In this document: positions 1,799 through 32,576 of the stretch, piece after piece
Position numbering within the stretch: the stretch's first letter is position 1
Layout: each line of letters opens with the position of its first letter
Sequence record: PP712906.1
Reading direction: 5' to 3' (one strand)
DNA: 64,000 nt
Notes under the pieces: generated by a model
Database searches by the model: none
Told to the model about the DNA's origin: nothing
What the model saw: the letters and a program-made list of their open reading frames with translations, nothing else
Translations under genes and position numbers: made by a program

Positions 1799-4027
1799 TT
1801 GATGCTTGTAGTGAAGTCTTCTGGCATTACAGAAGAATTTGAAGAAAGTAAATTGATGCGCGTACTTAGTGACGCATGTAAGAATACGACAATTGATCCA
1901 CATCAATTACTTGCCCGCGTGAAAGCTCAACTTAGCGACGGGATGACGAGCAAAGACATTCAAAAGGCAGCGATCAAAATCGCTGCCGATAGCATTTCAG
2001 TAGAAGAGCCAGATTATCAATACGTCGCGGCTCGACTGGCTATGTATGGTCTTCGCAAAGATGTATATGGTCAATTCGACCCTATTCCATTCAAACAACT
2101 CATTGAAAGAAACACTGCAATCGAAGTTTACGATTCCGAGATTCTTGAAAAATGGTCAGACTCAGAACTAGAATACCTGGAATCTCAAGTCAAGCATGAG
2201 CGCGACTTTGATTTTGCGTATGCAGGTGTAATGCAATTCAAAGAAAAATACTTGTGCAAAAACCGTGGTACTGGTGCGATTTACGAAACACCGCAATATG
2301 CTTACATGCTCATTGCTATGTGTTTGCACCAAGAAGAGAAATACGACCGATTAAAGCACGTTATTGACTTTTATAACGCTGTTTCAACTCAAAAACTTTC
2401 GCTACCTACACCGATTATGGCAGGCGTTCGTACCCCGACACGTCAATTTAGCTCGTGTGTGAAAATCGAATCTGGCGACTCGCTGCGTTCGATCAACAAG
2501 GTATCTGAAGCTATCGTTGATTACATTAGTAAACGTGCGGGTATTGGCGTAAACGGTGGTGCAATTCGAGCAGAGGGTTCGGTTGTACGTGCGGGTGAAA
2601 TTCGTCACACTGGCGTAATTCCTTTCTGGAAACACTTTCAGACTGCGGTTAAATCGTGTTCTCAAGGTGGTGTACGTGGCGGTGCTGCGACTCTGACTTA
2701 CCCGATCTGGCACTTAGAAGTAGAAAAGCTTCTTGTTCTGAAGAACAACAAAGGTGTTGAAGAGAACCGTATTCGTCATCTTGACTACAGCGTATCAATT
2801 AACCGATTGATGATGCAACGCCTGGTTAATAACGAGTACATCACGCTATTCAGCCCCGATGAGCGTCACGGTGCGCTTTACGGTGAGTATCACACAAACC
2901 CAGAAGAGTTTGAGCGTCTTTACCTAGAGCTTGAAGCTGATCCGAAAGTGCGCAAGAAACGCATCAAGGCAACTGAACTATTCAGTATCTTTGGTCAAGA
3001 GCGTTCAAGTACGGGTCGTATCTACCCGATCTTCGTAGATAACTTGAATGCACAGTCACCGTACATCGAAGCGATCAAGCAATCTAACTTGTGTATGGAA
3101 ATCGCGCTACCGACGTACCCGCTTGGTACTTCATATGAAGAAATCGCACTTTGTACGCTTGCTGCTTACAACTTAGGTGCAATCGAATCGCCGAGTGAAT
3201 TTGCTCGACTGGCGCCAATCGTTATTCGTGCGCTTGATAATCTACTAGATTACCAAGATTATCCAGTAGAAGCCGCTGAAAAAGCAAAATATCGTCGCGC
3301 ATTGGGTATCGGTATCACTAACTTTGCATATTTCTTGGCAAAGAACTTCGTCGGATACGACGCATCAGCTAAGTATCTCGTGCATGAATGGATGGAAGCA
3401 ATGTCTTACTACAACATTCAAGCATCAATGATGTTAGCAAAAGAGCGTGGCGCGAACAAATGGCATCGTAAGACGCGCTGGGCTAAAGGTCAGTTGCCAA
3501 TTGACTGGTACAATAAAAATGTTGATAAGCTTGTCAAGCCGAATTATAATCTAGACTGGGAAGCACTTCGCGCTGACGTAATTCGTTACGGTATGCGAAA
3601 TGACACCACTTCAGCTTTCATGCCATGTGAAAGTAGTTCTCAGATTAGCAACAGCACGAACGGTATTGAGCCACCACGTGGTCTAGTATCGACTAAGCAA
3701 TCAAAAGACGGCGTTTTCAACCAAGTTGTGCCTGAAGTTGACTTGCTGAAAGATGAATACGGACTTGCGTGGAAAGTTTGCGAAAAAGATAACTTTGGTT
3801 ATCTGACGCTAGTTGCAATCATGCAGAAGTTTGTTGATCAAAGCATTTCAGCGAACCAATATTACGATCCTTCTAAATTCCCAAATGGGAAGATTCCGAT
3901 GGAACGTATTTTTGAAGAACTAGCGTTCTGTAGCCATTACGGTATCAAGACTCTTTATTATTCTAACACTCGTGACGGTGCTGACGGCACTGAAGACGGG
4001 GAAGATTGTGATGGGTGCAAAGTCTGA
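1799..4027 (+). CDS. nrdA: class Ia ribonucleotide reductase alpha subunit
   Basis: N-terminal ATP cone, SSC, SNLCMEI active site, KTLYY, C-terminal CxxC. Confidence 0.98.
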   Translation: MMLVVKSSGITEEFEESKLMRVLSDACKNTTIDPHQLLARVKAQLSDGMTSKDIQKAAIKIAADSISVEEPDYQYVAARLAMYGLRKDVYGQFDPIPFKQLIERNTAIEVYDSEILEKWSDSELEYLESQVKHERDFDFAYAGVMQFKEKYLCKNRGTGAIYETPQYAYMLIAMCLHQEEKYDRLKHVIDFYNAVSTQKLSLPTPIMAGVRTPTRQFSSCVKIESGDSLRSINKVSEAIVDYISKRAGIGVNGGAIRAEGSVVRAGEIRHTGVIPFWKHFQTAVKSCSQGGVRGGAATLTYPIWHLEVEKLLVLKNNKGVEENRIRHLDYSVSINRLMMQRLVNNEYITLFSPDERHGALYGEYHTNPEEFERLYLELEADPKVRKKRIKATELFSIFGQERSSTGRIYPIFVDNLNAQSPYIEAIKQSNLCMEIALPTYPLGTSYEEIALCTLAAYNLGAIESPSEFARLAPIVIRALDNLLDYQDYPVEAAEKAKYRRALGIGITNFAYFLAKNFVGYDASAKYLVHEWMEAMSYYNIQASMMLAKERGANKWHRKTRWAKGQLPIDWYNKNVDKLVKPNYNLDWEALRADVIRYGMRNDTTSAFMPCESSSQISNSTNGIEPPRGLVSTKQSKDGVFNQVVPEVDLLKDEYGLAWKVCEKDNFGYLTLVAIMQKFVDQSISANQYYDPSKFPNGKIPMERIFEELAFCSHYGIKTLYYSNTRDGADGTEDGEDCDGCKV

Positions 4028-23230: not shown

Positions 23231-23659
23231 CGTTGTGTTTAGATAACCAATACCGTTGATAACAACGTTGTTGTTTGATCTAGAACCGTACATTACAACC
23301 GATTCAGAATTCGATTCACGTCTGATAATCTGCCATTGATTTACATCGCCATCATAGTGATAACGAACCCCGTGATTTCCGTTGTCCTCAGTCAAGTATA
23401 GACTTGCATCGGTGCTTGCAGTACTGCTCAAGTGCAATTGCGCAGTCGATTTGGCGATTTGCAAATCGCCACTCATGACATCACCAGCACGTTTAACAAC
23501 AGACTCGGTTAAATCTGTATGCGGGTCTGGCTTGTCATTTTCTGTATAAAGTTTGTAGCCATTGTAAAGTACTGTTTCTCCTTGCGGATCGAAACGCAAA
23601 TTACCGCCATGCCAAACTATGTTACCGCCAATCGCGGTTGTTGAACGTAATTCTGCCAT
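20384..23659 (-). CDS. long tail fibre distal subunit (gp36/37-like) with peptidase S74 chaperone, copy 2
   Basis: Same 29-aa N-terminus as copy 1, SDARVKTNV motif; own late promoter (23698-23705) and terminator (20360-20383). Confidence 0.9.
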   Translation of the reverse strand: MAELRSTTAIGGNIVWHGGNLRFDPQGETVLYNGYKLYTENDKPDPHTDLTESVVKRAGDVMSGDLQIAKSTAQLHLSSTASTDASLYLTEDNGNHGVRYHYDGDVNQWQIIRRESNSESVVMYGSRSNNNVVINGIGYLNTTQRIFADNYHPNADKWTTARTLTLSGEVTGSVSIDGSSNVTINTVVPNHTTYAEVGLSASNPEYIATGRTLSGVDTTVDWDTLYRGGFYNKLSQGLNRPAGFTGYWYAQTMTYGSTTNATQVAYPYGISGNSGTIALRTRYSDVWEDWVYMYHTDYHPEADKWTTARTLTLSGDVSGSVSFDGSSNISLAVTVADDSHTHDGRYYTEAESDARFVNATGDTMTGYLNVPTTQAQSSNVVYGFGGTSGGKIGSMQLSSGDIDDYQRSGFIDVNSSITGKPAEETGWMWGVHTEHNNGNGYAMTLAMGQNSNRLWWKRRESGVSSAWMKIFDDEYHPLADKWTTARTLTLNGDVSGSASIDGSSNVTLSVVVANDSHTHDGRYYTETEADARFAPIAGGGYVQKTGDTMSSSLIITDSAGNTAPASETVKVDKFGLIGNRTAVYLHNSNTAGEVVLGVGGILADNKQFSVNSTSITSTVNITAPTFIGELSGNATTATSATSATQATKWTTARTLTIGKTGKSVNGTANVSWSPQEVTGTNGAGQISFGTNNRVTTAEFISLLSAQGAFSTWYWTCRGSWSYAAQVTVDTGFGVFGTAGSVIEVHGTSTTNCTIKVITPTTASGATTRQEFIYIDNGSGYSPGWRANYNSSYHPLADKWTTARTLTLNGDVSGSASIDGSANVTLSVAVADDSHNHTHSDGSFTVNGTLISTGVSSYDKIRVWSSGSYTIGMASAQSFGWLNDYAMTFTMNNDTDRGFLWRDEGDSATDGAMSLTTGGNLMVKNVIALGGDTTRYMQNSANEGSWLFRSDNGKTWHFGARNTSWIHNSTDATSGFYYYQSIQSAGNITAYSDARVKTNVERITNPLEKIDRLNGYTYDRTDVECPRQTGVIAQEVLEVLPEAVVESGGDADGHYAVAYGNMVGLLIEGIKEEKRKREALEERIARLEALLS

Positions 23660-23723
23660 TAGTTTCATTCCATTTATTGAAATTTTTCATATGACAGTAT
23701 TTATTATGCCGTAAAAAAGGGCG

Positions 23724-24254
23724 CTATTTGCGCCCCTTACGATTTGCCTTATTTGCTTTTCTTTTTGCTCTACGCAATTCTTTGCGTTTTGCGATTTTGT
23801 CTGCACGTCTAACTGCATCATAATCCGCAGCACACGACGCAGCAAACGCATCAGGCTTGAAAACGGGTTCTTGACCCACGTATCCCAAGATAGTGCCCTT
23901 AGCTTCGTTATACGCAACGTGTGAACGATGGGATGGGTCTGGGTTGATGTCAACGTGAACTTCAAACCCACGAGTACCACACATTGGCTTAACACGCAGA
24001 GCAGTTTCACCTGCTTTATAGACTTCATTCATCAAACGACTACGAATACCATCTTTACACGACATGTACGCTGGTTCAGTTTCGATAGATTTGAATACTT
24101 GAGCGCCTTTGCTACCCTCAAGGTGAATGATGATTACAGTAGCGTAACTAATCATATCACTCTTACGCTTGCTATCACACCCAACATAAATCGTACTGTT
24201 CGGATGACTGTTATTGATAGCTGTTTCAATTGCTTCCCAATCGAACATTTTCAC
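23724..24254 (-). CDS. RNase H-like YkuK family protein
   Basis: IYVGCDS, RL..EV, EVHVDIN motifs. Confidence 0.8.
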   Translation of the reverse strand: MKMFDWEAIETAINNSHPNSTIYVGCDSKRKSDMISYATVIIIHLEGSKGAQVFKSIETEPAYMSCKDGIRSRLMNEVYKAGETALRVKPMCGTRGFEVHVDINPDPSHRSHVAYNEAKGTILGYVGQEPVFKPDAFAASCAADYDAVRRADKIAKRKELRRAKRKANKANRKGRK

Positions 24255-24298
24255 CTCTGTACAAAAAAGGGCAGCACAATGCCGCCCTTATCACTTAT

Positions 24299-25735
24299 TT
24301 AAAAGCTGTAGCGTTCAACGCCTACAGTTTTCAGCATGATCTTGACTGGCTCAAGCTCACCACCCAACAGTGAAGTCAGGATAGATGGGCTACAACCCGA
24401 TACCAGTGCAGTACCCGCTTCGCCAGCTTTAACCGGAACGTTGCCAAGACGACCACGAATGTTCCAGAAGACTAGTTGTGGCATTTCATAGCCAGCACGT
24501 GCGTACATAGCTTTGATTGCGTCGAAGTTTGCACGTTCGCCACGACCGTACCAGCCACCACCAGTATTTGCTTGGTCGAATTCCATGTCGCTCATGATAA
24601 GCAACTTAGTCGGCATTTCTTCTTGTGAAAGATTTGCACGTTTCGCACGTTCTAACAGAACGTTGAAGCACTTACCGATGTTTGTGCTCATGTCTTCGCC
24701 TGATCGGTTCATGTTGTCAAGACGCTCTTTTAGTGAGCTACCGCGTAACTGGTGGAAGTGCGGATCGCTTGAGAAGGAAATGAACTGATCTTTGAAGATG
24801 CCTTCATTGCGTTCAGCAACATAGATGCCAAGAGACATTGCAACTTGCTTACAAGTCACACCTGAACGATCTGCACCTGCGTTGATTGGCGTGCTCATAG
24901 AGCCAGACACGTCAACAACTGGGATGATGCGCTCATCAGAGCCTTCCATGTAGTTCGGCAGGGCTTTCCATTGCTCGTTCGCTACAGACGCATTACCATG
25001 ACTAACGCTCTTAACGACATCATATGGGAACAAGGCACCAGCGTTGATCTTCGCTTCACCTTTTTGAAGCGACTCGATGTAGCTTGTGTAACGAGCAGAA
25101 GCATTACGACCGAATGCTTGTTGATAACGAGCCGACGCTACAGATGGCAACTTACCGAAGTCGATTGTATCCCATTCTTGCGCACACATCTTCTGTTCAA
25201 CAGTGTCAGACAAAAGTGCTAGAATCTTACGCCACTGCTTCGCAGTTACGCCAAGAGACTTGATTGTGCGCTTGAACACATGACCGTTTTTGCTGTTCTC
25301 GCGTGGGAACCACTTCGCAGCGAGACTGTTCTTGTCGTTTACAATCGCATTTGTCCACAGCGTGATCGCGTCTTTTTCAAGACGTGTACCGAAAGCAGAA
25401 ATCAAGTCGTCGAAACGACCTAGTTCTGGAATTTTCGACATTACAGCACGAGCTACGTCAGGCTGCTCATTACAAAGCTTAGTGAATAGAGTACGGAAAG
25501 TACCACGTTCACCCGCACCACCGCGAACATCACGAGACCACAAAAGAATACGTGTCGCTAGTTCTGGGTTTTCTGCAAACGCACGACCGAACAGTGTTTT
25601 AGACTGATCGTTACCACGCATAGCAGCAATACCGAAGAACAAGTTTAGACACTCGTTACCTGAAGTGCTGTGAGTAACTGCACCGTTTGCTGTACGTGAA
25701 TCGTTAGTGGTCATTGCGTTCATAAATGCTGACAT
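24299..25735 (-). CDS. DUF2828 family TROVE-like/vWA protein
   Basis: T.NGA..HSTSG..CL.LF N-terminus, helical region with RD.RGGAGER, MIDAS VVDVSGSM, ISFSS, MSDMEFD. Confidence 0.85.
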   Translation of the reverse strand: MSAFMNAMTTNDSRTANGAVTHSTSGNECLNLFFGIAAMRGNDQSKTLFGRAFAENPELATRILLWSRDVRGGAGERGTFRTLFTKLCNEQPDVARAVMSKIPELGRFDDLISAFGTRLEKDAITLWTNAIVNDKNSLAAKWFPRENSKNGHVFKRTIKSLGVTAKQWRKILALLSDTVEQKMCAQEWDTIDFGKLPSVASARYQQAFGRNASARYTSYIESLQKGEAKINAGALFPYDVVKSVSHGNASVANEQWKALPNYMEGSDERIIPVVDVSGSMSTPINAGADRSGVTCKQVAMSLGIYVAERNEGIFKDQFISFSSDPHFHQLRGSSLKERLDNMNRSGEDMSTNIGKCFNVLLERAKRANLSQEEMPTKLLIMSDMEFDQANTGGGWYGRGERANFDAIKAMYARAGYEMPQLVFWNIRGRLGNVPVKAGEAGTALVSGCSPSILTSLLGGELEPVKIMLKTVGVERYSF

Positions 25736-25770
25736 TGTTTATTCCTCATATTAAATTGCTGTAAAATGTC
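25729..25770 (-). promoter_or_regulatory. 5'-leader CAGCAA-motif hairpin occluding RBS and AUG (copy A)
   Basis: GACAUUUUA-CAGCAA-UUUAAUAUGAGGAAUAAAC-AAUGUC; the 3' strand contains the start codon. Confidence 0.75.
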
Positions 25771-25784
25771 GTTTTGATGTGATG

Positions 25785-25813
25785 ATTATACACGGATTTG
25801 AACCTGTGTAAAC
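25785..25813 (-). promoter_or_regulatory. T4-type early promoter
   Basis: GTTTAC-17 nt-TATAAT with upstream A-tract. Confidence 0.8.
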
Positions 25814-25827
25814 ACTTTTTTCAATTT

Positions 25828-26142
25828 TTATCGAAAATTCATTCGAGTTAGATTCGTACCGTTTTCGTGAATCTCAACTAGCACGCGACCGCCCGTTTCA
25901 TAAGACGTTCGGAGAGAACGATAACCATGCTCTTCGAAGAATGTACGAATAATAGTCGCACCACGCTTGTCTTTATCAGCAGCGTGAATGGGCACTTTTA
26001 CGATGATAGGGAAACTAGACCCTGACTCAACTGCGTGCATGAATTCTTTCTCACATTCGCTCGTGTAATGCTCGATAAGAATTCGTTTTTCTTCTGCTTC
26101 ACGAGCGTGAATTTGTTGTTTGAGTTCATTATGATTAATCAT
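25828..26142 (-). CDS. hypothetical protein
   Basis: Coupled ORF; resembles its upstream neighbour (FPI.V.V). Confidence 0.7.
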   Translation of the reverse strand: MINHNELKQQIHAREAEEKRILIEHYTSECEKEFMHAVESGSSFPIIVKVPIHAADKDKRGATIIRTFFEEHGYRSLRTSYETGGRVLVEIHENGTNLTRMNFR

Positions 26143-26474
26143 TGAAACCCCGCTTGTTTGTTTTCTCGAATTGTCAATTTGACAAAAGAATATGAGTAAT
26201 CTCTCATATCACGCGGATCGCCAGAGTAATGTCCGAACTGTGCGTCGAAGTTATGAAAACCCTCGCGTCGCATGACGCCTTTGATGAGAGACATCATTTC
26301 ATCACAACATTCATTGCGGTCAACATTCACCTGAATCGTGATTGGAAACTGAAACCCAGCAACGCCACCGATTTTACGTTCGATTGCTTTGCGCATTTCA
26401 ACTACGAAGAGTTCTTCACGAGTTGAGCGATTCTGTTTGACTTTTTGAATTAATGTATCGTATAAATTACCCAT
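26139..26474 (-). CDS. hypothetical protein
   Basis: Start at MGNLY; coupled ORF. Confidence 0.7.
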   Translation of the reverse strand: MGNLYDTLIQKVKQNRSTREELFVVEMRKAIERKIGGVAGFQFPITIQVNVDRNECCDEMMSLIKGVMRREGFHNFDAQFGHYSGDPRDMRDYSYSFVKLTIRENKQAGFQ

Positions 26475-26841
26475 CAATATATTCCTTAATCGGCTTAGAA
26501 AAGTGACGAATACAAGAACTGTCAAGTCGTTTACGACCATCACCATCTATATCAGGTAGTGTGTATTCGTCATTAAACGGCTGACCGCTTTCTTTCGCAA
26601 TCTCATAGGCATCGGCTCGATTGAAGTATTCACCACAATAGTTGATAAACCCTTGACCGCGATCCCCGAGTTCGTTTCGATGTTCATATGTACAACCTAG
26701 TTCTTTCAATAACTTAAAGACTGATTGCATGTTTCGACCGAAATGGCAGCTATCAGCAACAACAATGTCGCGCACTTCACCGTTCGGTAGTGTTACTCGA
26801 ATTGCATTAGCAGCAGACGATATTACATTGACGTGCGACAT
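26467..26841 (-). CDS. conserved phage hypothetical protein
   Basis: QGF...G.YFNR.DAY.IA..SGQ pattern. Confidence 0.7.
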   Translation of the reverse strand: MSHVNVISSAANAIRVTLPNGEVRDIVVADSCHFGRNMQSVFKLLKELGCTYEHRNELGDRGQGFINYCGEYFNRADAYEIAKESGQPFNDEYTLPDIDGDGRKRLDSSCIRHFSKPIKEYIDG

Positions 26842-27182
26842 GTATCGTACCTCATAAAAATTGAACCAACGCGCTTATACTGACCAGAGTGAGAAAGCAA
26901 CAGAGCCATTTTACTATGGCCAACGGGATTGCTTGTCACTAGAACAACAGTGCGCGGAAAATTACGATGATCAATCGCATGAGAGAGAATATCATACCCC
27001 TCTCTACCAACATCATCACCTAGGTCATTGTCCATGAATAGCGTGATGTCAGTTAGATTTGTGTGCTTGACAAAATTCATACCGTCTTCGAATGTACGAA
27101 GAACTAGCTTTTCATCGTCGCGTACATAATCTGACGTGTATTTGTCAATACTGCGAAGATCATCAATCATAACGTAGTACAT
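26823..27182 (-). CDS. cyclic-phosphate-processing receiver-like domain protein
   Basis: IDDLR, MDNDLG...GYD, TSNPVG motifs. Confidence 0.7.
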   Translation of the reverse strand: MYYVMIDDLRSIDKYTSDYVRDDEKLVLRTFEDGMNFVKHTNLTDITLFMDNDLGDDVGREGYDILSHAIDHRNFPRTVVLVTSNPVGHSKMALLLSHSGQYKRVGSIFMRYDTCRTSM

Positions 27183-27244
27183 AATATTTCTCTTTCGATA
27201 GTGTTGATAAATACATCATACAGGTTCAACAAACGGAAGTCAAC

Positions 27245-27616
27245 ATGAACGACGAAAAAATTATTTCTTTTGATGAATATCTAAATGAAGGGTGGTTTGA
27301 AAGGCAATGGGCTAGATATAAGGCAGGTGAAGATGCACGCAGCATAAAGAAACTAGCTAAGATGCATACCAAGCTTCTGCACATCGAACAGAAAGCAAAG
27401 CAAAACAAATACCGATACGAAGCCGTACGGTTCAACTACGAACACATCAAAATGAATGTGCTCGATGCCAAGAAGCTAATTAACAAGCTGCGATACAAGA
27501 AAGGGATTAGTCAAGAGCTAGTTCAGGCAATGGATAAACTAGACATTGAACTTGATAGACTCAACGACTTTGCCGTTGAGGGATTGCATGAGCTAATGAT
27601 TCAACATAAGCTATAA
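27245..27616 (+). CDS. putative internal head protein
   Basis: GATAAATA late promoter at 27206; N-terminus ISFDEYLNE resembles a T4 capsid-targeting sequence. Confidence 0.6.
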   Translation: MNDEKIISFDEYLNEGWFERQWARYKAGEDARSIKKLAKMHTKLLHIEQKAKQNKYRYEAVRFNYEHIKMNVLDAKKLINKLRYKKGISQELVQAMDKLDIELDRLNDFAVEGLHELMIQHKL

Positions 27617-27647
27617 AAGAAAAGCCCCGTTTTTGGGGCTTTTTTGT
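27617..27647. terminator. bidirectional terminator
   Basis: AAAAGCCCC-GTTTTT-GGGGCTTTTT. Confidence 0.75.
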
Positions 27648-27860
27648 TTAATGTGAGTGGCGTAACTTCTTTTCGATCATTCGATCTACAATCGTGGAGT
27701 ACATAAGATGCTCTTTGTAGTATTTCTCATCAACTCGGTTGCACTGGAATTGTCGAAAATCTTTGCGTAAGCGGGCAATGAATTTATTAAGTGCTTTGCG
27801 CACTTTGCAAACTTCAGACAGTTCCATGCTTTTTAGTGTATCTTCAGAAAGTATTTCCAT
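27648..27860 (-). CDS. hypothetical protein
   Basis: GAGGTG RBS. Confidence 0.65.
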   Translation of the reverse strand: MEILSEDTLKSMELSEVCKVRKALNKFIARLRKDFRQFQCNRVDEKYYKEHLMYSTIVDRMIEKKLRHSH

Positions 27861-27888
27861 GATTGTTCACCTCTTAGTTAATAGAATA

Positions 27889-27934
27889 CGGGAGACACGG
27901 GAATCGAACCCATTGCCTTGACCACATATCTCCC
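27889..27934 (-). ncRNA. 46-nt tRNA-like mini RNA (acceptor and T arm, no anticodon arm)
   Basis: GGGAGAU/GUCUCCC acceptor, AUGGG-UUCGAUU-CCCGU T arm, UGGUCAAGGC D-loop-like linker; no encoded CCA. Confidence 0.6.
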
Positions 27935-27958
27935 ACTGAGAGTTACGCCAATCTGATT

Positions 27959-28183
27959 TTAATGTGCTAGACTCATCAAACGGCGCATACGTTCGCGTTC
28001 TGAAAGCTCATCCAAATTATCTACTTTCACCTCTTTGACTTCTTCTTTCGGCTCTTCTGTCTCATCTGTTTTACGAGCACCGGGACCGATGTTTTTCCAA
28101 AGTGGACTATTGCGCCAGTTGTCGTTGAAACCATTGCCTAGACCACGCCCTTCGCGTGCGTGCGATTTGTTATGAATGCTCAT
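27959..28183 (-). CDS. hypothetical protein
   Basis: Coupled to the upstream gene. Confidence 0.65.
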   Translation of the reverse strand: MSIHNKSHAREGRGLGNGFNDNWRNSPLWKNIGPGARKTDETEEPKEEVKEVKVDNLDELSERERMRRLMSLAH

Positions 28184-28386
28184 TATTCGTTTGATTTCTT
28201 TGTTACTTGTCTTGCAATACCTACAGCAGCAGCACCAGCAGCTACTTTAGCACCTGTCTTTGCCGCTTTACCGGCTTTCTTTGCACCAGACTTGACACGA
28301 TCTTTGATAGAACGTTTCTTTTTCTTATCTTCTGGTCGAGATTCTTCAATTTCTGACATGAATTTGTCAAAGGTCTTTTCACTCAT
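28183..28386 (-). CDS. Lys/Ala-rich basic protein, putative internal head protein
   Basis: N-terminus MSEKTFDKFMSEIEE; ACTAAATA late-like promoter at 28417-28424. Confidence 0.6.
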   Translation of the reverse strand: MSEKTFDKFMSEIEESRPEDKKKKRSIKDRVKSGAKKAGKAAKTGAKVAAGAAAVGIARQVTKKSNE

Positions 28387-28423
28387 GACTTATCTCCAGT
28401 TAGTTGAGTTCATTTGTATTTAG

Positions 28424-28657
28424 TCATGAAAAATCGAACTTTCGGGTTAATTGCACATCAAATTTGCGCTCGAAACGACAACGCTCAGTACCGTAAAGCA
28501 CATCATCGAGCGTAAAGCGTTTACGTTTTTGTGTGTGTAGGTTCATATAACGCTCTAGAGCAGCTTCTGAGTCGAATTCAATACGTTCACAACGTCTTTG
28601 TTCGGATGTCTGAGAATAATCGCTTACAACGCGATACAGAAACAATCCGCGTATCAC
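28424..28657 (-). CDS. hypothetical protein
   Basis: GTG-start ORF. Confidence 0.55.
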   Translation of the reverse strand: MIRGLFLYRVVSDYSQTSEQRRCERIEFDSEAALERYMNLHTQKRKRFTLDDVLYGTERCRFERKFDVQLTRKFDFS

Positions 28658-28664
28658 AACTGCA

Positions 28665-28802
28665 TTAAGAGAATTTGAAGTTTTTTACAGTAACGCCGTC
28701 AATATCACCGAATTCACTCATGGTAAAGATGATCTCTGAGTCTGGCATTTCAGCGACGCGCTTCATTTTAGCTATTGATGTTCGTTTATTAGATTTGTAC
28801 AT
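28665..28802 (-). CDS. small hypothetical protein (45 aa; not in ORF track)
   Basis: GAGGTG RBS; MYKSNKRTSIAKMKRVAEMPDSEIIF... Confidence 0.55.
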   Translation of the reverse strand: MYKSNKRTSIAKMKRVAEMPDSEIIFTMSEFGDIDGVTVKNFKFS

Positions 28803-28888
28803 TTTATCACCTCATAACGACTGTACACGATTTATCAGACACCATAAACAAAAAAACCTGCTCAAGGCAGGTTTAGATGTGCAATACA

Positions 28889-29136
28889 CAGACATTCGAG
28901 AATTGTTTTATCGTCTTTCCTTAAATCTCAATTGACTATCTCGATGTTTCTCATCAAGAGAATACCCATGATTCGGCATGAGACCTATTTCGTTTAACAG
29001 TACGAGCACCGTCTTAATGGTCATTTCCTACCACGAGAATGCGACAGGCTCACGTCATCACTGAGAAAGCAGCTAGTGCGCCTCATTACTATTAAAGTTT
29101 GCTTCTTTGATTAGTAATAGTTGCTGTACAATGTCT
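28889..29136 (-). ncRNA. CAGCAA-motif RNA, large form (copy B)
   Basis: 5' AGACAUU-GUA-CAGCAA pairs with 3' AAUGUCU-G; starts 11 nt after tRNA-Ser CCA; paralogous to copy D. Confidence 0.7.
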
Positions 29137-29147
29137 TATTGCGAATT

Positions 29148-29236
29148 TGGCGGAGATACTGGGAATCGAACCCAGAGAACGCTATTAACGTCCGACACCT
29201 TAGCAGGGTGCTGTCATACCTTTAGACCATATCTCC
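29148..29236 (-). tRNA. tRNA-Ser(GCU)
   Basis: GGAGAUA/UAUCUCC, loop CUGCUAA, long variable arm, CCA. Confidence 0.95.
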
Positions 29237-29241
29237 GTAGA

Positions 29242-29421
29242 TCATTTCTTACCACGCTCTGCTTTGCTAATCTCGACAGCAGCGATTTGCGCGTTGGCTT
29301 CTTTCTCAGTGTCATGAGTACCAAGTACTCGACCTTTAGATGAAAGAGCAACCCATTTGTCGCCACGCTTCTCGACTTTCTCAACAAGCTTGTGATATTC
29401 ATCAAACGTTTTAAGTTTCAT
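29242..29421 (-). CDS. 59-aa putative internal head protein (not in ORF track)
   Basis: MKLKTFDEYHKLVEKVEKRGDKW...; TATAAATA at 29447-29454 and GAGGGA RBS. Confidence 0.75.
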   Translation of the reverse strand: MKLKTFDEYHKLVEKVEKRGDKWVALSSKGRVLGTHDTEKEANAQIAAVEISKAERGKK

Positions 29422-29471
29422 TTGTCATCCCTCAGTTAGTTTATTGTATTTATAACTGAACGACTTTTAAA

Positions 29472-29531
29472 CAGTGGCATGCTGCTCTCATGCTCAGACA
29501 CATATTTGCTCTTATTGCTGGCGTGTGCCAC
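29472..29531 (-). ncRNA. CAGCAA-motif RNA (copy C)
   Basis: GUGGCA-CACGC-CAGCAA ... UGCCAC-UG; spacing is 11 nt rather than 9. Confidence 0.55.
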
Positions 29532-29676
29532 GCGCTTCGCAGATCCCTTTTGATAATTTAACGACCAGCGGGACTCTTAGCAGGTCTACACATAGCCTTT
29601 CAGCTATATCTTCTTTTAAGACCATAGTGTCGTACGGTCTATTCACTCTCTTTCGATTCGCGTTGCTAAGTGAATT

Positions 29677-31165: not shown

Positions 31166-31380
31166 CAGACAATACCGAAGTGTTTTTTCGTCTTTGACAT
31201 GAATCGGAGTTGACTATCTTGTTGCTTCTCAACAAGCAAATATCGTCTGCTTCAGCGACGCGCCTATCTGACTATTTCTAGGCAGAGAGAATCTTTCCTT
31301 TCAAGCTGCGCCGAAGCCACTGCCCAGGTGAAGATCATTACCATTTTTAAGTAATTTTAATTTGTTGCTGTATATTGTCT
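31166..31380 (-). ncRNA. CAGCAA-motif RNA, large form (copy D)
   Basis: AGACAAU-AUA-CAGCAA ... AUUGUCU-G; shares internal blocks with copy B. Confidence 0.7.
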
Positions 31381-31594: not shown

Positions 31595-31669
31595 TGGTGG
31601 ACACGCAGGGAGTCGAACCCTATCTTCCTCATTGCAAGTGAGGCGCTTTCCCAATTAAGCTAACGGCCC
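31595..31669 (-). tRNA. tRNA-Ala(UGC), imperfect acceptor stem
   Basis: Loop CUUGCAA, G3:U70, CCA; lower acceptor needs a bulge to pair. Confidence 0.85.
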
Positions 31670-31989: not shown

Positions 31990-32106
31990 CTGAGTGTTAT
32001 TACTTGCGTCGTCCAGACCAGTGATACCAACACTGAAAGGGAATCGAACCCTAAACATTTCTTTTCATCAGAAGAATATTAGTAAATTGTTTGCTGAAAA
32101 CACTCT
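31990..32106 (-). ncRNA. CAGCAA-motif RNA with permuted tRNA-like domain (copy E, YrlA-like)
   Basis: GAGUGUU-UU-CAGCAA ... AGGG-UUCGAUU-CCCU, UCAGUG/CACUGG closed hairpin, UGGA, AACACUC-AG. Confidence 0.75.
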
Positions 32107-32506: not shown

Positions 32507-32517
32507 TTGAATTTAAA

Positions 32518-32576
32518 CAGTAATCCTTTTTGCTTTTTCCAAATAAAAGTTTTGTATTGTTTGCTGTAAGATTACT
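32518..32576 (-). ncRNA. CAGCAA-motif RNA, minimal form (copy F)
   Basis: AGUAAUCU-UA-CAGCAA ... GGAUUACU-G; starts 5 nt after tRNA-Trp CCA. Confidence 0.72.

Follow-up and report, generated by a model that had tools for sequence, protein, structure and literature searches.

A Ro60-like phage protein, the RNA module that travels with its gene and an apparent autoregulatory mimic of that module in its mRNA leader

What is a copy of a small-RNA module doing at the start of the very gene with which such modules travel? This question is raised by a 64,000-nucleotide (nt) stretch of sequence record PP712906.1 (hereafter, the window), which belongs to a KVP40-like Vibrio phage. Over the 1.9 kb queried (24299..26200), it matches Vibrio phage TCU-VP03-AIR1 at 100% identity and the T4-like Schizotequatrovirus KVP40 at 98.5%. 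The gene in question (the Ro-like gene) encodes 478 amino acids (aa), in which Pfam finds DUF7788 (1.2e-45) and DUF2828 (9.3e-30), and it is the counterpart of KVP40.0300 (annotation 'RNA-binding protein'; PHROG 850). Ro60 and its Y RNAs form a classic RNA-surveillance particle, whose regulation and phage versions are poorly understood. A first-pass annotation of the window proposed that the leader of the Ro-like gene hides the ribosome-binding site (RBS) and start codon in an RNA motif, and that the protein represses its own translation there. Here, we follow up this proposal and describe a Ro-like particle with a new RNA signature and an apparent autoregulatory mimic.

The promoter of the gene is the best sigma-70-like site in 23500..29300 (11/12 positions), the exact string GTTTAC-N17-TATAAT occurs once in the window and both hexamers are kept in relatives. 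It is probably an early promoter, given its likeness to the T4 early-promoter consensus. Transcription is predicted to start near 25778, roughly 8 nt before the leader unit (~14 nt lie between the -10 hexamer and GACAUU), and the whole leader measures ~45 nt. In the unit, the 5' half-stem GACAUU is followed by the single-stranded UUACAGCAA, by a loop enclosing the Shine-Dalgarno sequence (SD) GAGGA and by AAUGUC, which pairs with GACAUU and contains the start codon (table 1). The 5' G sits 9 nt before CAGCAA, exactly as in the copies at 32575, 32105, 31379 and 29135 in the tRNA array. Promoter, short leader and spacing had all been described correctly, with every element on the minus strand. 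As a separate observation, the 17-nt promoter spacer (window 25789..25810) is an inverted repeat, ACACAGG..CCGUGU, and on the plus strand it resembles a terminator, with a hairpin and then a run of T. The spacers of relatives differ, yet are again palindromic (ACGGGTTTAAACCCGT in nt-1, CATGATAATTCATG in 1.081.O and CGCTT..AAGCG in K575), and in Escherichia phage EC6 the homologous gene likewise has an inverted repeat, of 8 bp, in its promoter region (L009, ~2935..2967).

Is this leader truly an instance of the free-RNA motif? The module consists of a half-stem, 3 nt, CAGCAA, a loop and the complementary half-stem. From 35 short units of distant phages, none of them KVP40-like, we built a covariance model (R1) and ran it over both strands of the whole window (128 kb of sequence) with filters off. 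The leader came second, as a full-length match at 25727..25770 (21.4 bits, E 0.0033). It was preceded by a compact unit in the tRNA array (U1, 32516..32575; 38.8 bits, E 4e-8) and followed by matches to the 5' portions of three longer units (32105, 31379 and 29133). R1 also detects the leaders of relatives: ValKK3 (26.4 bits), nt-1 (20.3), K575 (19.3), 1.081.O (18.4) and a relative with 62% identity (30.1 bits, E 5e-6). A simple pattern count agrees. The pattern sought (G, a 6-nt half-stem, 3 nt and CAGCAA, with a perfect 6-bp partner no more than 60 nt away) is present four times in the window, once in the leader, against a mean of 0.51 over 200 dinucleotide shuffles. The presence of a leader unit in the window is therefore beyond chance. 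Rfam at gathering thresholds reports only tRNAs in the window, and a small relaxed search of the leader against Rfam matched no family. Folding energy was dropped as a line of support, since neither the leader hairpin nor the long units are more stable than shuffled sequence.

The comparison of relatives tells us more. Upstream regions of the gene were taken from 15 lineages of the clade, with protein identities from 99% down to 56%. A leader unit enclosing the SD in its loop is kept in 13 of the 15, down to 58% protein identity. The GACAUU/AAUGUC stem, with the AUG inside it, is found in ten lineages, and one lineage has GACAUA/UAUGUC, a compensatory change from U:A to A:U. In three others, phage D479 and two relatives from metagenomes, the 5' half reads GAAAUU and its partner is GAUUUC or AAUUUC. 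In these three, the 3' half has been relocated to the SD end, 2-5 nt before the AUG. As the G of the AUG is fixed, a C-to-A change in the 5' half can be met only by a new partner, and such a partner is what these lineages have. When the units are folded in isolation, the minimum free energy (MFE) structure is exactly this stem in 13/13 cases (-1.2 to -4.8 kcal/mol). In the alignment, 100% of stem cells are paired (23-49% with the partner slid) and two of six pairs have changed on both sides, although the alignment had been trimmed at stems already identified, which favours pairing. In addition, the box is the best-kept part of the intergenic region in lineages with 58-77% protein identity, while its flanks vary. 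Altogether, pairing with the translation start region is under selection, judging from these substitutions. The first-pass annotation had thus read both the pairing and its kinship with the free RNAs correctly: R1 finds the leader independently, and the stem survives through compensatory changes.

The check it proposed, for the motif upstream of homologous genes in other genomes, thus finds the motif within the clade; outside the clade, no unit overlaps a start codon. In five other lineages (L065, L088, L010, L090 and L081), however, only 0-29 nt separate the end of a full unit from the SD or AUG, and protein bound there would likewise crowd the start site. One phage close to nt-1 shows a different arrangement. 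In CZ01 (L007, 363..1000), a GIY-YIG homing endonuclease gene lies directly upstream and replaces the usual promoter and leader; the 5' end is rewritten as ATGGAGCTTACAGCAATGACAAGT, in which CUUACAGCAA abuts an AUG with no closing stem. Two further ideas about the leader were set aside. An upstream short open reading frame (ORF) starting from the in-loop AUG (AUGAGG) is ruled out, as that AUG is not conserved, and RegB-type cleavage is unlikely, since the SD lacks the GGAG that RegB presumably recognizes.

The link between protein and module is also seen away from the leader. Five distant phages carry arrays of the module immediately next to the gene and on its strand. Escherichia phage EC6 has four copies downstream, among tRNAs, whereas the copies lie upstream in Campylobacter phage PC14 (two) and Listeria phage LMSP-25 (three) and downstream in Mycobacterium phage Kingsolomon and Staphylococcus phage 6ec (three each). 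In Aeromonas phage Aeh1, no module was found within 3 kb of the gene. Among 80 viral-metagenome loci from IMG/VR (homologues of 41-54% identity), most carry one or two units just past the stop codon or before the start. R1 gives 59 matches at E <= 1 in 54 loci, all on the gene strand, and 24 of them come from outside the model-building set. Stem sequences vary between lineages while complementarity is kept; the units of that alignment were chosen for a perfect stem, which makes the percentage paired circular, whereas the diversity of stems found at one genomic position is free of this circularity. Across distant phages, protein family and RNA module travel together. The link is much stronger than the leader alone had indicated, spanning five distant host groups and most of the 80 metagenomic contigs on the same strand. 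It was the leader that the first-pass annotation had ranked as the strongest tie between protein and motif; that place belongs to synteny across host groups.

No Rfam family covers these units, although some long ones give sub-threshold matches to YrlA. A 2025 Listeria phage study speculated that abundant non-coding transcripts near an Rsr-like gene might be Y RNAs (PMC12282133). The most highly transcribed non-coding region reported for phage CKA15 (26,236-26,727; PMC12282133) is not used here as evidence for expression of the units, since by position in the related LMSP-25 it is probably a ROOL RNA and not the CAGCAA units. In LMSP-25 itself, a ROOL RNA (L011, 1470..2021; 88.5 bits, gathering score 99.1) lies ~1 kb upstream of the Ro-like gene and adjoins tRNAs and the three CAGCAA units.

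Returning to the window, the Ro-like gene shares its strand with an array of 28 tRNAs located 3.4-11 kb upstream, in which the box recurs after tRNA genes. The array holds four free units, U1 to U4 (table 1). U2, U3 and U4 close by terminal stems in both MFE and centroid folds (32105/31992, 31380/31167 and 29136/28890), that of U3 being 9 bp long. The stem of U4 has the same sequence as that of the leader, and the U4 box is one mismatch from the leader box. The leader loop is shorter (19 nt) than those of all 35 free units in alignment A3 (at least 27 nt), in keeping with a mimic and not with a complete RNA gene. We considered, and dropped, the argument that the leader stem tracks a free-RNA stem, as it is true for U4 here and fails in D479. 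Identity over tRNA-Ser and U4 (28850..29240) is 93-99% in phages of the KVP40/ValKK3 group and 79% in nt-1. Against ValKK3 it reaches 93.7%, compared with 88% for the stretch of the Ro-like gene and its upstream neighbour, and part of the higher identity may come simply from the conserved tRNA.

Some further elements on this strand deserve mention. A candidate fifth unit at 29470..29533 (minus strand; GUGGCA-CACGC-CAGCAA ... UGCCAC-UGUUU) has 5 rather than 3 nt before CAGCAA and is not reported by R1. At 38210..38340 (minus strand) lies a tRNA-like gene with an acceptor stem (GGUCGAGUG..CACUCGACC), D-arm and T-arm sequences and a ~60-nt insert with CAGCAA in the anticodon region (R1, 10 bits); ARAGORN does not call it, and its Rfam tRNA match is below the gathering score. 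Moreover, Rfam finds two minus-strand tRNAs missed by ARAGORN, one at 35558..35670 (113 nt, 49.8 bits), which may hold an insert, and one at 31598..31669 (44.9 bits).

What kind of protein accompanies these RNAs? An AlphaFold model, built from a 36-sequence alignment, has a predicted local distance difference test (pLDDT) score of 83.4 and a predicted template-modelling (pTM) score of 0.85. In a Foldseek search of the Protein Data Bank (PDB), the best eight matches are all Ro60, full-length, with E-values of 5e-8 to 2e-6 and template-modelling (TM) scores of 0.52-0.62. They include 9kop, 9l5y, 1yvp, 1yvr, 2i91 and 9nep (Xenopus Ro60, Thermus phage phiLo Ro60 and a Ro60/pre-5S rRNA complex), and matches other than Ro60 cover the vWA domain only. 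Identity in the Ro60 alignments is 12-17%. The MIDAS residues (DxSxS...T...D: D275, S277, S279, T351 and D383) are invariant in the family alignment. Sequence searches see nothing of this: Pfam finds DUF2828 and DUF7788 only, with no TROVE match at E <= 0.01, and phmmer against PDB sequences returns no Ro60 at E <= 10. As modelled, the Ro-like protein is a distant Ro60-like ring protein, in which a predicted ring of HEAT-like repeats is closed by a C-terminal vWA/MIDAS domain.

The family is very large, with more than 7,000 matches among the candidates scored in one search and 10,336 cluster representatives at 50% identity in a profile search. An annotated phage collection holds 711 records, from hosts including Escherichia, Salmonella, Campylobacter, Listeria, Staphylococcus and Mycobacterium, and the mycobacteriophage members are annotated 'Ro-like RNA binding protein'. 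Eukaryotes, too, have proteins with DUF2828/DUF7788, which measure 600-900 aa and come from fungi (many Trichoderma species and Histoplasma), plants (Striga, Ipomoea and Papaver), Naegleria gruberi, the mite Oppia nitens and an aphelid (entries P0241-P0341, P0448, P0477, P0357 and P0401). One fungal entry is named after mimivirus L728.

Table 1. Features of the Ro-like system in the window
Feature	Position	Strand	Basis
Promoter of Ro-like gene: -35 GTTTAC (25813..25808), 17-nt spacer, -10 TATAAT (25790..25785)	25785..25813	-	sequence
Leader unit, miniature copy of the phage small-RNA module	25731..25770	-	sequence, covariance model R1
Leader 5' half-stem GACAUU	25770..25765	-	sequence
Leader single-stranded UUACAGCAA (UUA-CAGCAA)	25764..25756	-	sequence
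Leader loop, 19 nt, UUUAAUAUGAGGAAUAAAC, holds SD GAGGA (25747..25743)	25755..25737	-	sequence
Leader 3' half-stem AAUGUC, contains AUG (25735..25733)	25736..25731	-	sequence
U1, 60 nt, between tRNA-Trp and tRNA-Asn, GUAAUC-UUACAGCAA-loop-GAUUAC-UGUU, compact stem-loop	32516..32575	-	R1
U2, ~114 nt, GAGUGUU-UUCAGCAA ... AACACUC, insert with T-arm-like GGGUUCGAUUCCC	31992..32105	-	R1, 17.1 bits on 5' part
U3, ~214 nt, after tRNA-Arg, AGACAAUAU-ACAGCAA ... structured insert ... GUAUUGUCU-GUA	31167..31380	-	R1, 13.8 bits on 5' part
U4, ~247 nt, last element of tRNA array, AGACAUU-GUACAGCAA ... AAUGUCU-GUG	28890..29136	-	terminal stem, box
Terminator after U4	28874..28854	-	terminator scan
Ro-like gene, 478-aa ORF, DUF2828 helical repeats and DUF7788 vWA domain with MIDAS metal-binding site	24299..25735	-	Pfam, model
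Terminator-like hairpin between Ro-like and RNaseH_like genes	24289..24267	-	terminator scan
RNaseH_like gene (PF04308, YkuK/DUF458), downstream neighbour of Ro-like gene	23724..24254	-	Pfam, 5.9e-17

The downstream neighbour of the Ro-like gene may also matter. An RNaseH_like gene follows it throughout the clade, directly or within a few short ORFs (relatives L097, L098 and L104 included). By analogy with PNPase, which partners Ro60, the RNaseH_like protein may be a nuclease partner of the Ro-like system.

How, then, would the pieces work together? The window encodes a putative Ro60-like ring protein and at least four candidate partner small RNAs within the tRNA array. We infer both that the protein binds the module and that its binding to the leader represses translation. 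The leader hairpin alone would be too weak to block ribosomes, and the gene would at first be translated from its early-type promoter. Protein in excess of its free RNA partners would then bind the leader copy, clamp the stem and occupy the region needed by the 30S subunit, which would repress its own translation. Free RNAs would compete for the protein, so that its level would be titrated against the RNA copies. Autoregulation by partner-RNA mimicry of this kind is our best reading of the comparative evidence, and we would put its probability at about 0.5.

Several observations weigh against it. The leader hairpin alone has a folding energy of only -3.5 kcal/mol (z -0.6 to -0.9 relative to shuffles), and the SD is unpaired in the loop, with pairing restricted to the AUG and its neighbours. 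Repression therefore rests entirely on the assumed binding of protein. The earlier statement that the motif hides the RBS and AUG is consequently half right: the AUG does lie in the stem and GAGGA is enclosed, but RNA alone is insufficient, and the RBS is hidden only if something clamps the leader structure. The comparative signal also has its limits. Neither half of the stem varies within the GACAUU group, so that the signal comes mostly from four lineages, and the trimming of the alignment mentioned above tilts the pairing count in its favour. The unit is absent from two related lineages (P0011 and P0014) and from most of the distant phages, and the device is therefore clade-specific and dispensable. 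Lastly, the leader stem of D479 is unlike the stems of its free units, and the identity of the U4 and leader stems in this window may reflect only common descent. A weak stem and an exposed SD, on the other hand, are in keeping with a switch whose default state is open and which only the protein closes.

Other explanations have to be set against autoregulation by mimicry. Lying between tRNAs, the free units have to be cut out of the array precursor, and the nuclease that trims them (a host enzyme or the RNaseH_like protein, whose gene is a conserved neighbour) might also recognize the leader copy. A cut at its 3' edge, after AUGUC, would split the start codon from the reading frame, and the leader would then time mRNA decay, with or without the Ro-like protein. 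The three relocated leaders, which end in C-UGA or C-AGA before the AUG, recall the C-UG(U/A/G) end of canonical units, as such processing would have it; the leader tail in the window, however, is C-AGC, not the commonest tail, and an SD in the loop with the AUG in the stem suits a translational operator rather than a cleavage site. We consider a processing or decay signal unlikely, and we see a similarly small chance that the leader acts in cis without repression, as a fifth partner RNA attached to the mRNA that recruits new protein or protects the 5' end. Many relatives have units co-oriented with the gene and abutting it on the upstream or downstream side, which suggests that sharing a transcript with the mRNA is ancestral. 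Yet a positive or neutral role leaves unexplained why the 3' half-stem always lies over the AUG or SD and why it moved to the SD, and the ~8 nt between the predicted 5' end and the unit mean that it is no protective hairpin at the very 5' terminus.

The likeness to the small RNAs might also be irrelevant. In T4-like phages, general translational repressors act at start regions, and the box could be a site for a repressor of the T4 RegA type or a DNA operator at ~+8 to +23; the separate palindrome in the promoter spacer, which varies between relatives yet stays palindromic, would be in keeping with a different regulator. However, R1, which is blind to this clade, recognizes the box together with its closing stem, and the compensatory and relocated pairings point to RNA structure and not to a DNA site, which leaves this explanation with a lower probability than the two before it. 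Least probable of all, and in our view very improbable, is a vestige with no present function, decayed from an upstream RNA gene such as those of the Campylobacter and Listeria phages. A loop shorter than in all aligned free units, the loss of the unit in two lineages and the upstream arrays of other phages are what decay might leave behind, whereas the best-conserved box of an intergenic region with varying flanks, and a compensatory change that maintains pairing, are not. It is the move of the 3' half-stem onto the SD that argues most strongly against a cis role, a different regulator and a vestige alike.

Our searches of the literature and Rfam found no description of a partnership between DUF2828 and a CAGCAA RNA, and those of the literature found no Ro60 that regulates its own mRNA through a Y-RNA mimic; searches on DUF2828, the motif sequence and Ro60 with Class I RNAs (see below) returned nothing relevant. 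Autoregulation by mimicry would make a simple circuit that can be tested, as partner RNAs should titrate the protein off its own mRNA. More broadly, a large family of phage proteins annotated 'RNA-binding protein' or 'Ro-like' gains a recognizable candidate RNA partner and a covariance model with which to find it.

Compared with known systems, the closest parallel is Ro60 with its Y RNAs. Like Ro60, the protein is predicted to be a helical-repeat ring capped by a vWA domain with a MIDAS, its candidate partner RNA genes adjoin the protein gene, a terminal stem brings the two ends of the RNA together and some units carry tRNA-like modules. In the window, terminal stems are present in U1-U4 and U2 has the T-arm-like GGGUUCGAUUCCC, while U1 and the leader have no tRNA-like part. 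Long units in relatives score 37.9-39.1 bits with YrlA (RF02553), none reaching the gathering score of 69, and the single match in the window (21 bits) lies over tRNA-Lys. Unlike Ro60, the protein has no TROVE Pfam match and no sequence match to a solved Ro60, and the RNA signature is a short stem plus single-stranded UUACAGCAA rather than a bulged helix or CGAA motif. Phage Ro60s with Y-like RNAs are known, including that of Thermus phage phiLo with Yrl1 and Yrl2; those proteins are canonical TROVE proteins and their RNAs are defined by a bulged stem and a CGAA motif (PMC4201824, PMC12135203). The units described here are putative Y-RNA analogues with a different recognition signature.

A second and more distant parallel is found in the Class I RNAs of Dictyostelium. 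These RNAs, 42-65 nt long, have an invariant 5' G, a 6-bp stem joining their ends, an 11-nt motif (CCUUACAGCAA) by the 5' half-stem with invariant U3, C6, C9, A10 and A11, a variable loop and a CUGU tail (PMC7919456). Common to them and the phage module are the 5' G, the 6-bp stem, (C)CUUACAGCAA directly behind the 5' half-stem, a variable loop rich in A/U, the C-UGU tail at the 3' end and a size of ~55-60 nt, and the consensus sequences of R1 and RF01414 are nearly superimposable. For the 11-nt motif, the leader (G-ACAUU-UUACAGCAA) agrees at 9/11 positions, including all five invariant ones, and U1 at 10/11. Within Rfam, U1 (31.8 bits, full length) and two Staphylococcus phage units (22.4 bits each) match RF01414 best, all below the gathering score of 41.5, and the leader has no match to RF01414 at E <= 10. 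Class I RNAs are reported to be unique to dictyostelids, and their one demonstrated direct binder is an RRM protein (PMC7919456). They are dictyostelid RNAs with a DUSE promoter element ~60 nt upstream, whereas our units lie in a Vibrio phage tRNA array or behind a sigma-70-type promoter. A pull-down is reported to have yielded four proteins, among them the uncharacterised DDB_G0281243 (bioRxiv 10.1101/2020.04.05.026054). Our length-filtered homologue and profile searches, a small sampling, recovered DUF2828 proteins from fungi, plants, Naegleria, a mite and an aphelid, and none from a dictyostelid. We treat the likeness as a lead suggested by sequence and not as membership, with homology unproven. 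It is conceivable, though improbable, that RNAs with the stem and UUACAGCAA and DUF2828 proteins make up a widespread, undescribed family of Ro-like phage ribonucleoproteins, of which Class I RNAs would be the eukaryotic counterpart. If so, a Ro-like or DUF2828-type protein would be the missing core partner of Class I RNAs, with DDB_G0281243 as a candidate, and in the KVP40 leader we would have the first example of a Ro-type protein that governs its own production by way of a partner-RNA mimic. Since Class I RNAs are abundant and needed for normal development, while their mechanism is obscure, the likeness gives a testable idea of what they bind.

The proposed regulation has precedents of its own. 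Autogenous repression by mimicry is known for the E. coli thrS operator, ribosomal proteins such as S8 and L1, T4 gp32 and RegA and the MS2 coat protein. As in these systems, a reduced copy of the main RNA ligand would sit at the RBS of the protein's own mRNA, where free ligand would compete with it. Unlike them, the regulator would be a Ro60-like ring and not a synthetase, ribosomal or coat protein. Some features expected of such an operator can be recognized in the leader: it resembles the class of RNAs associated with the protein, it overlaps the SD/AUG, and this overlap has been kept or re-created in 13 lineages.

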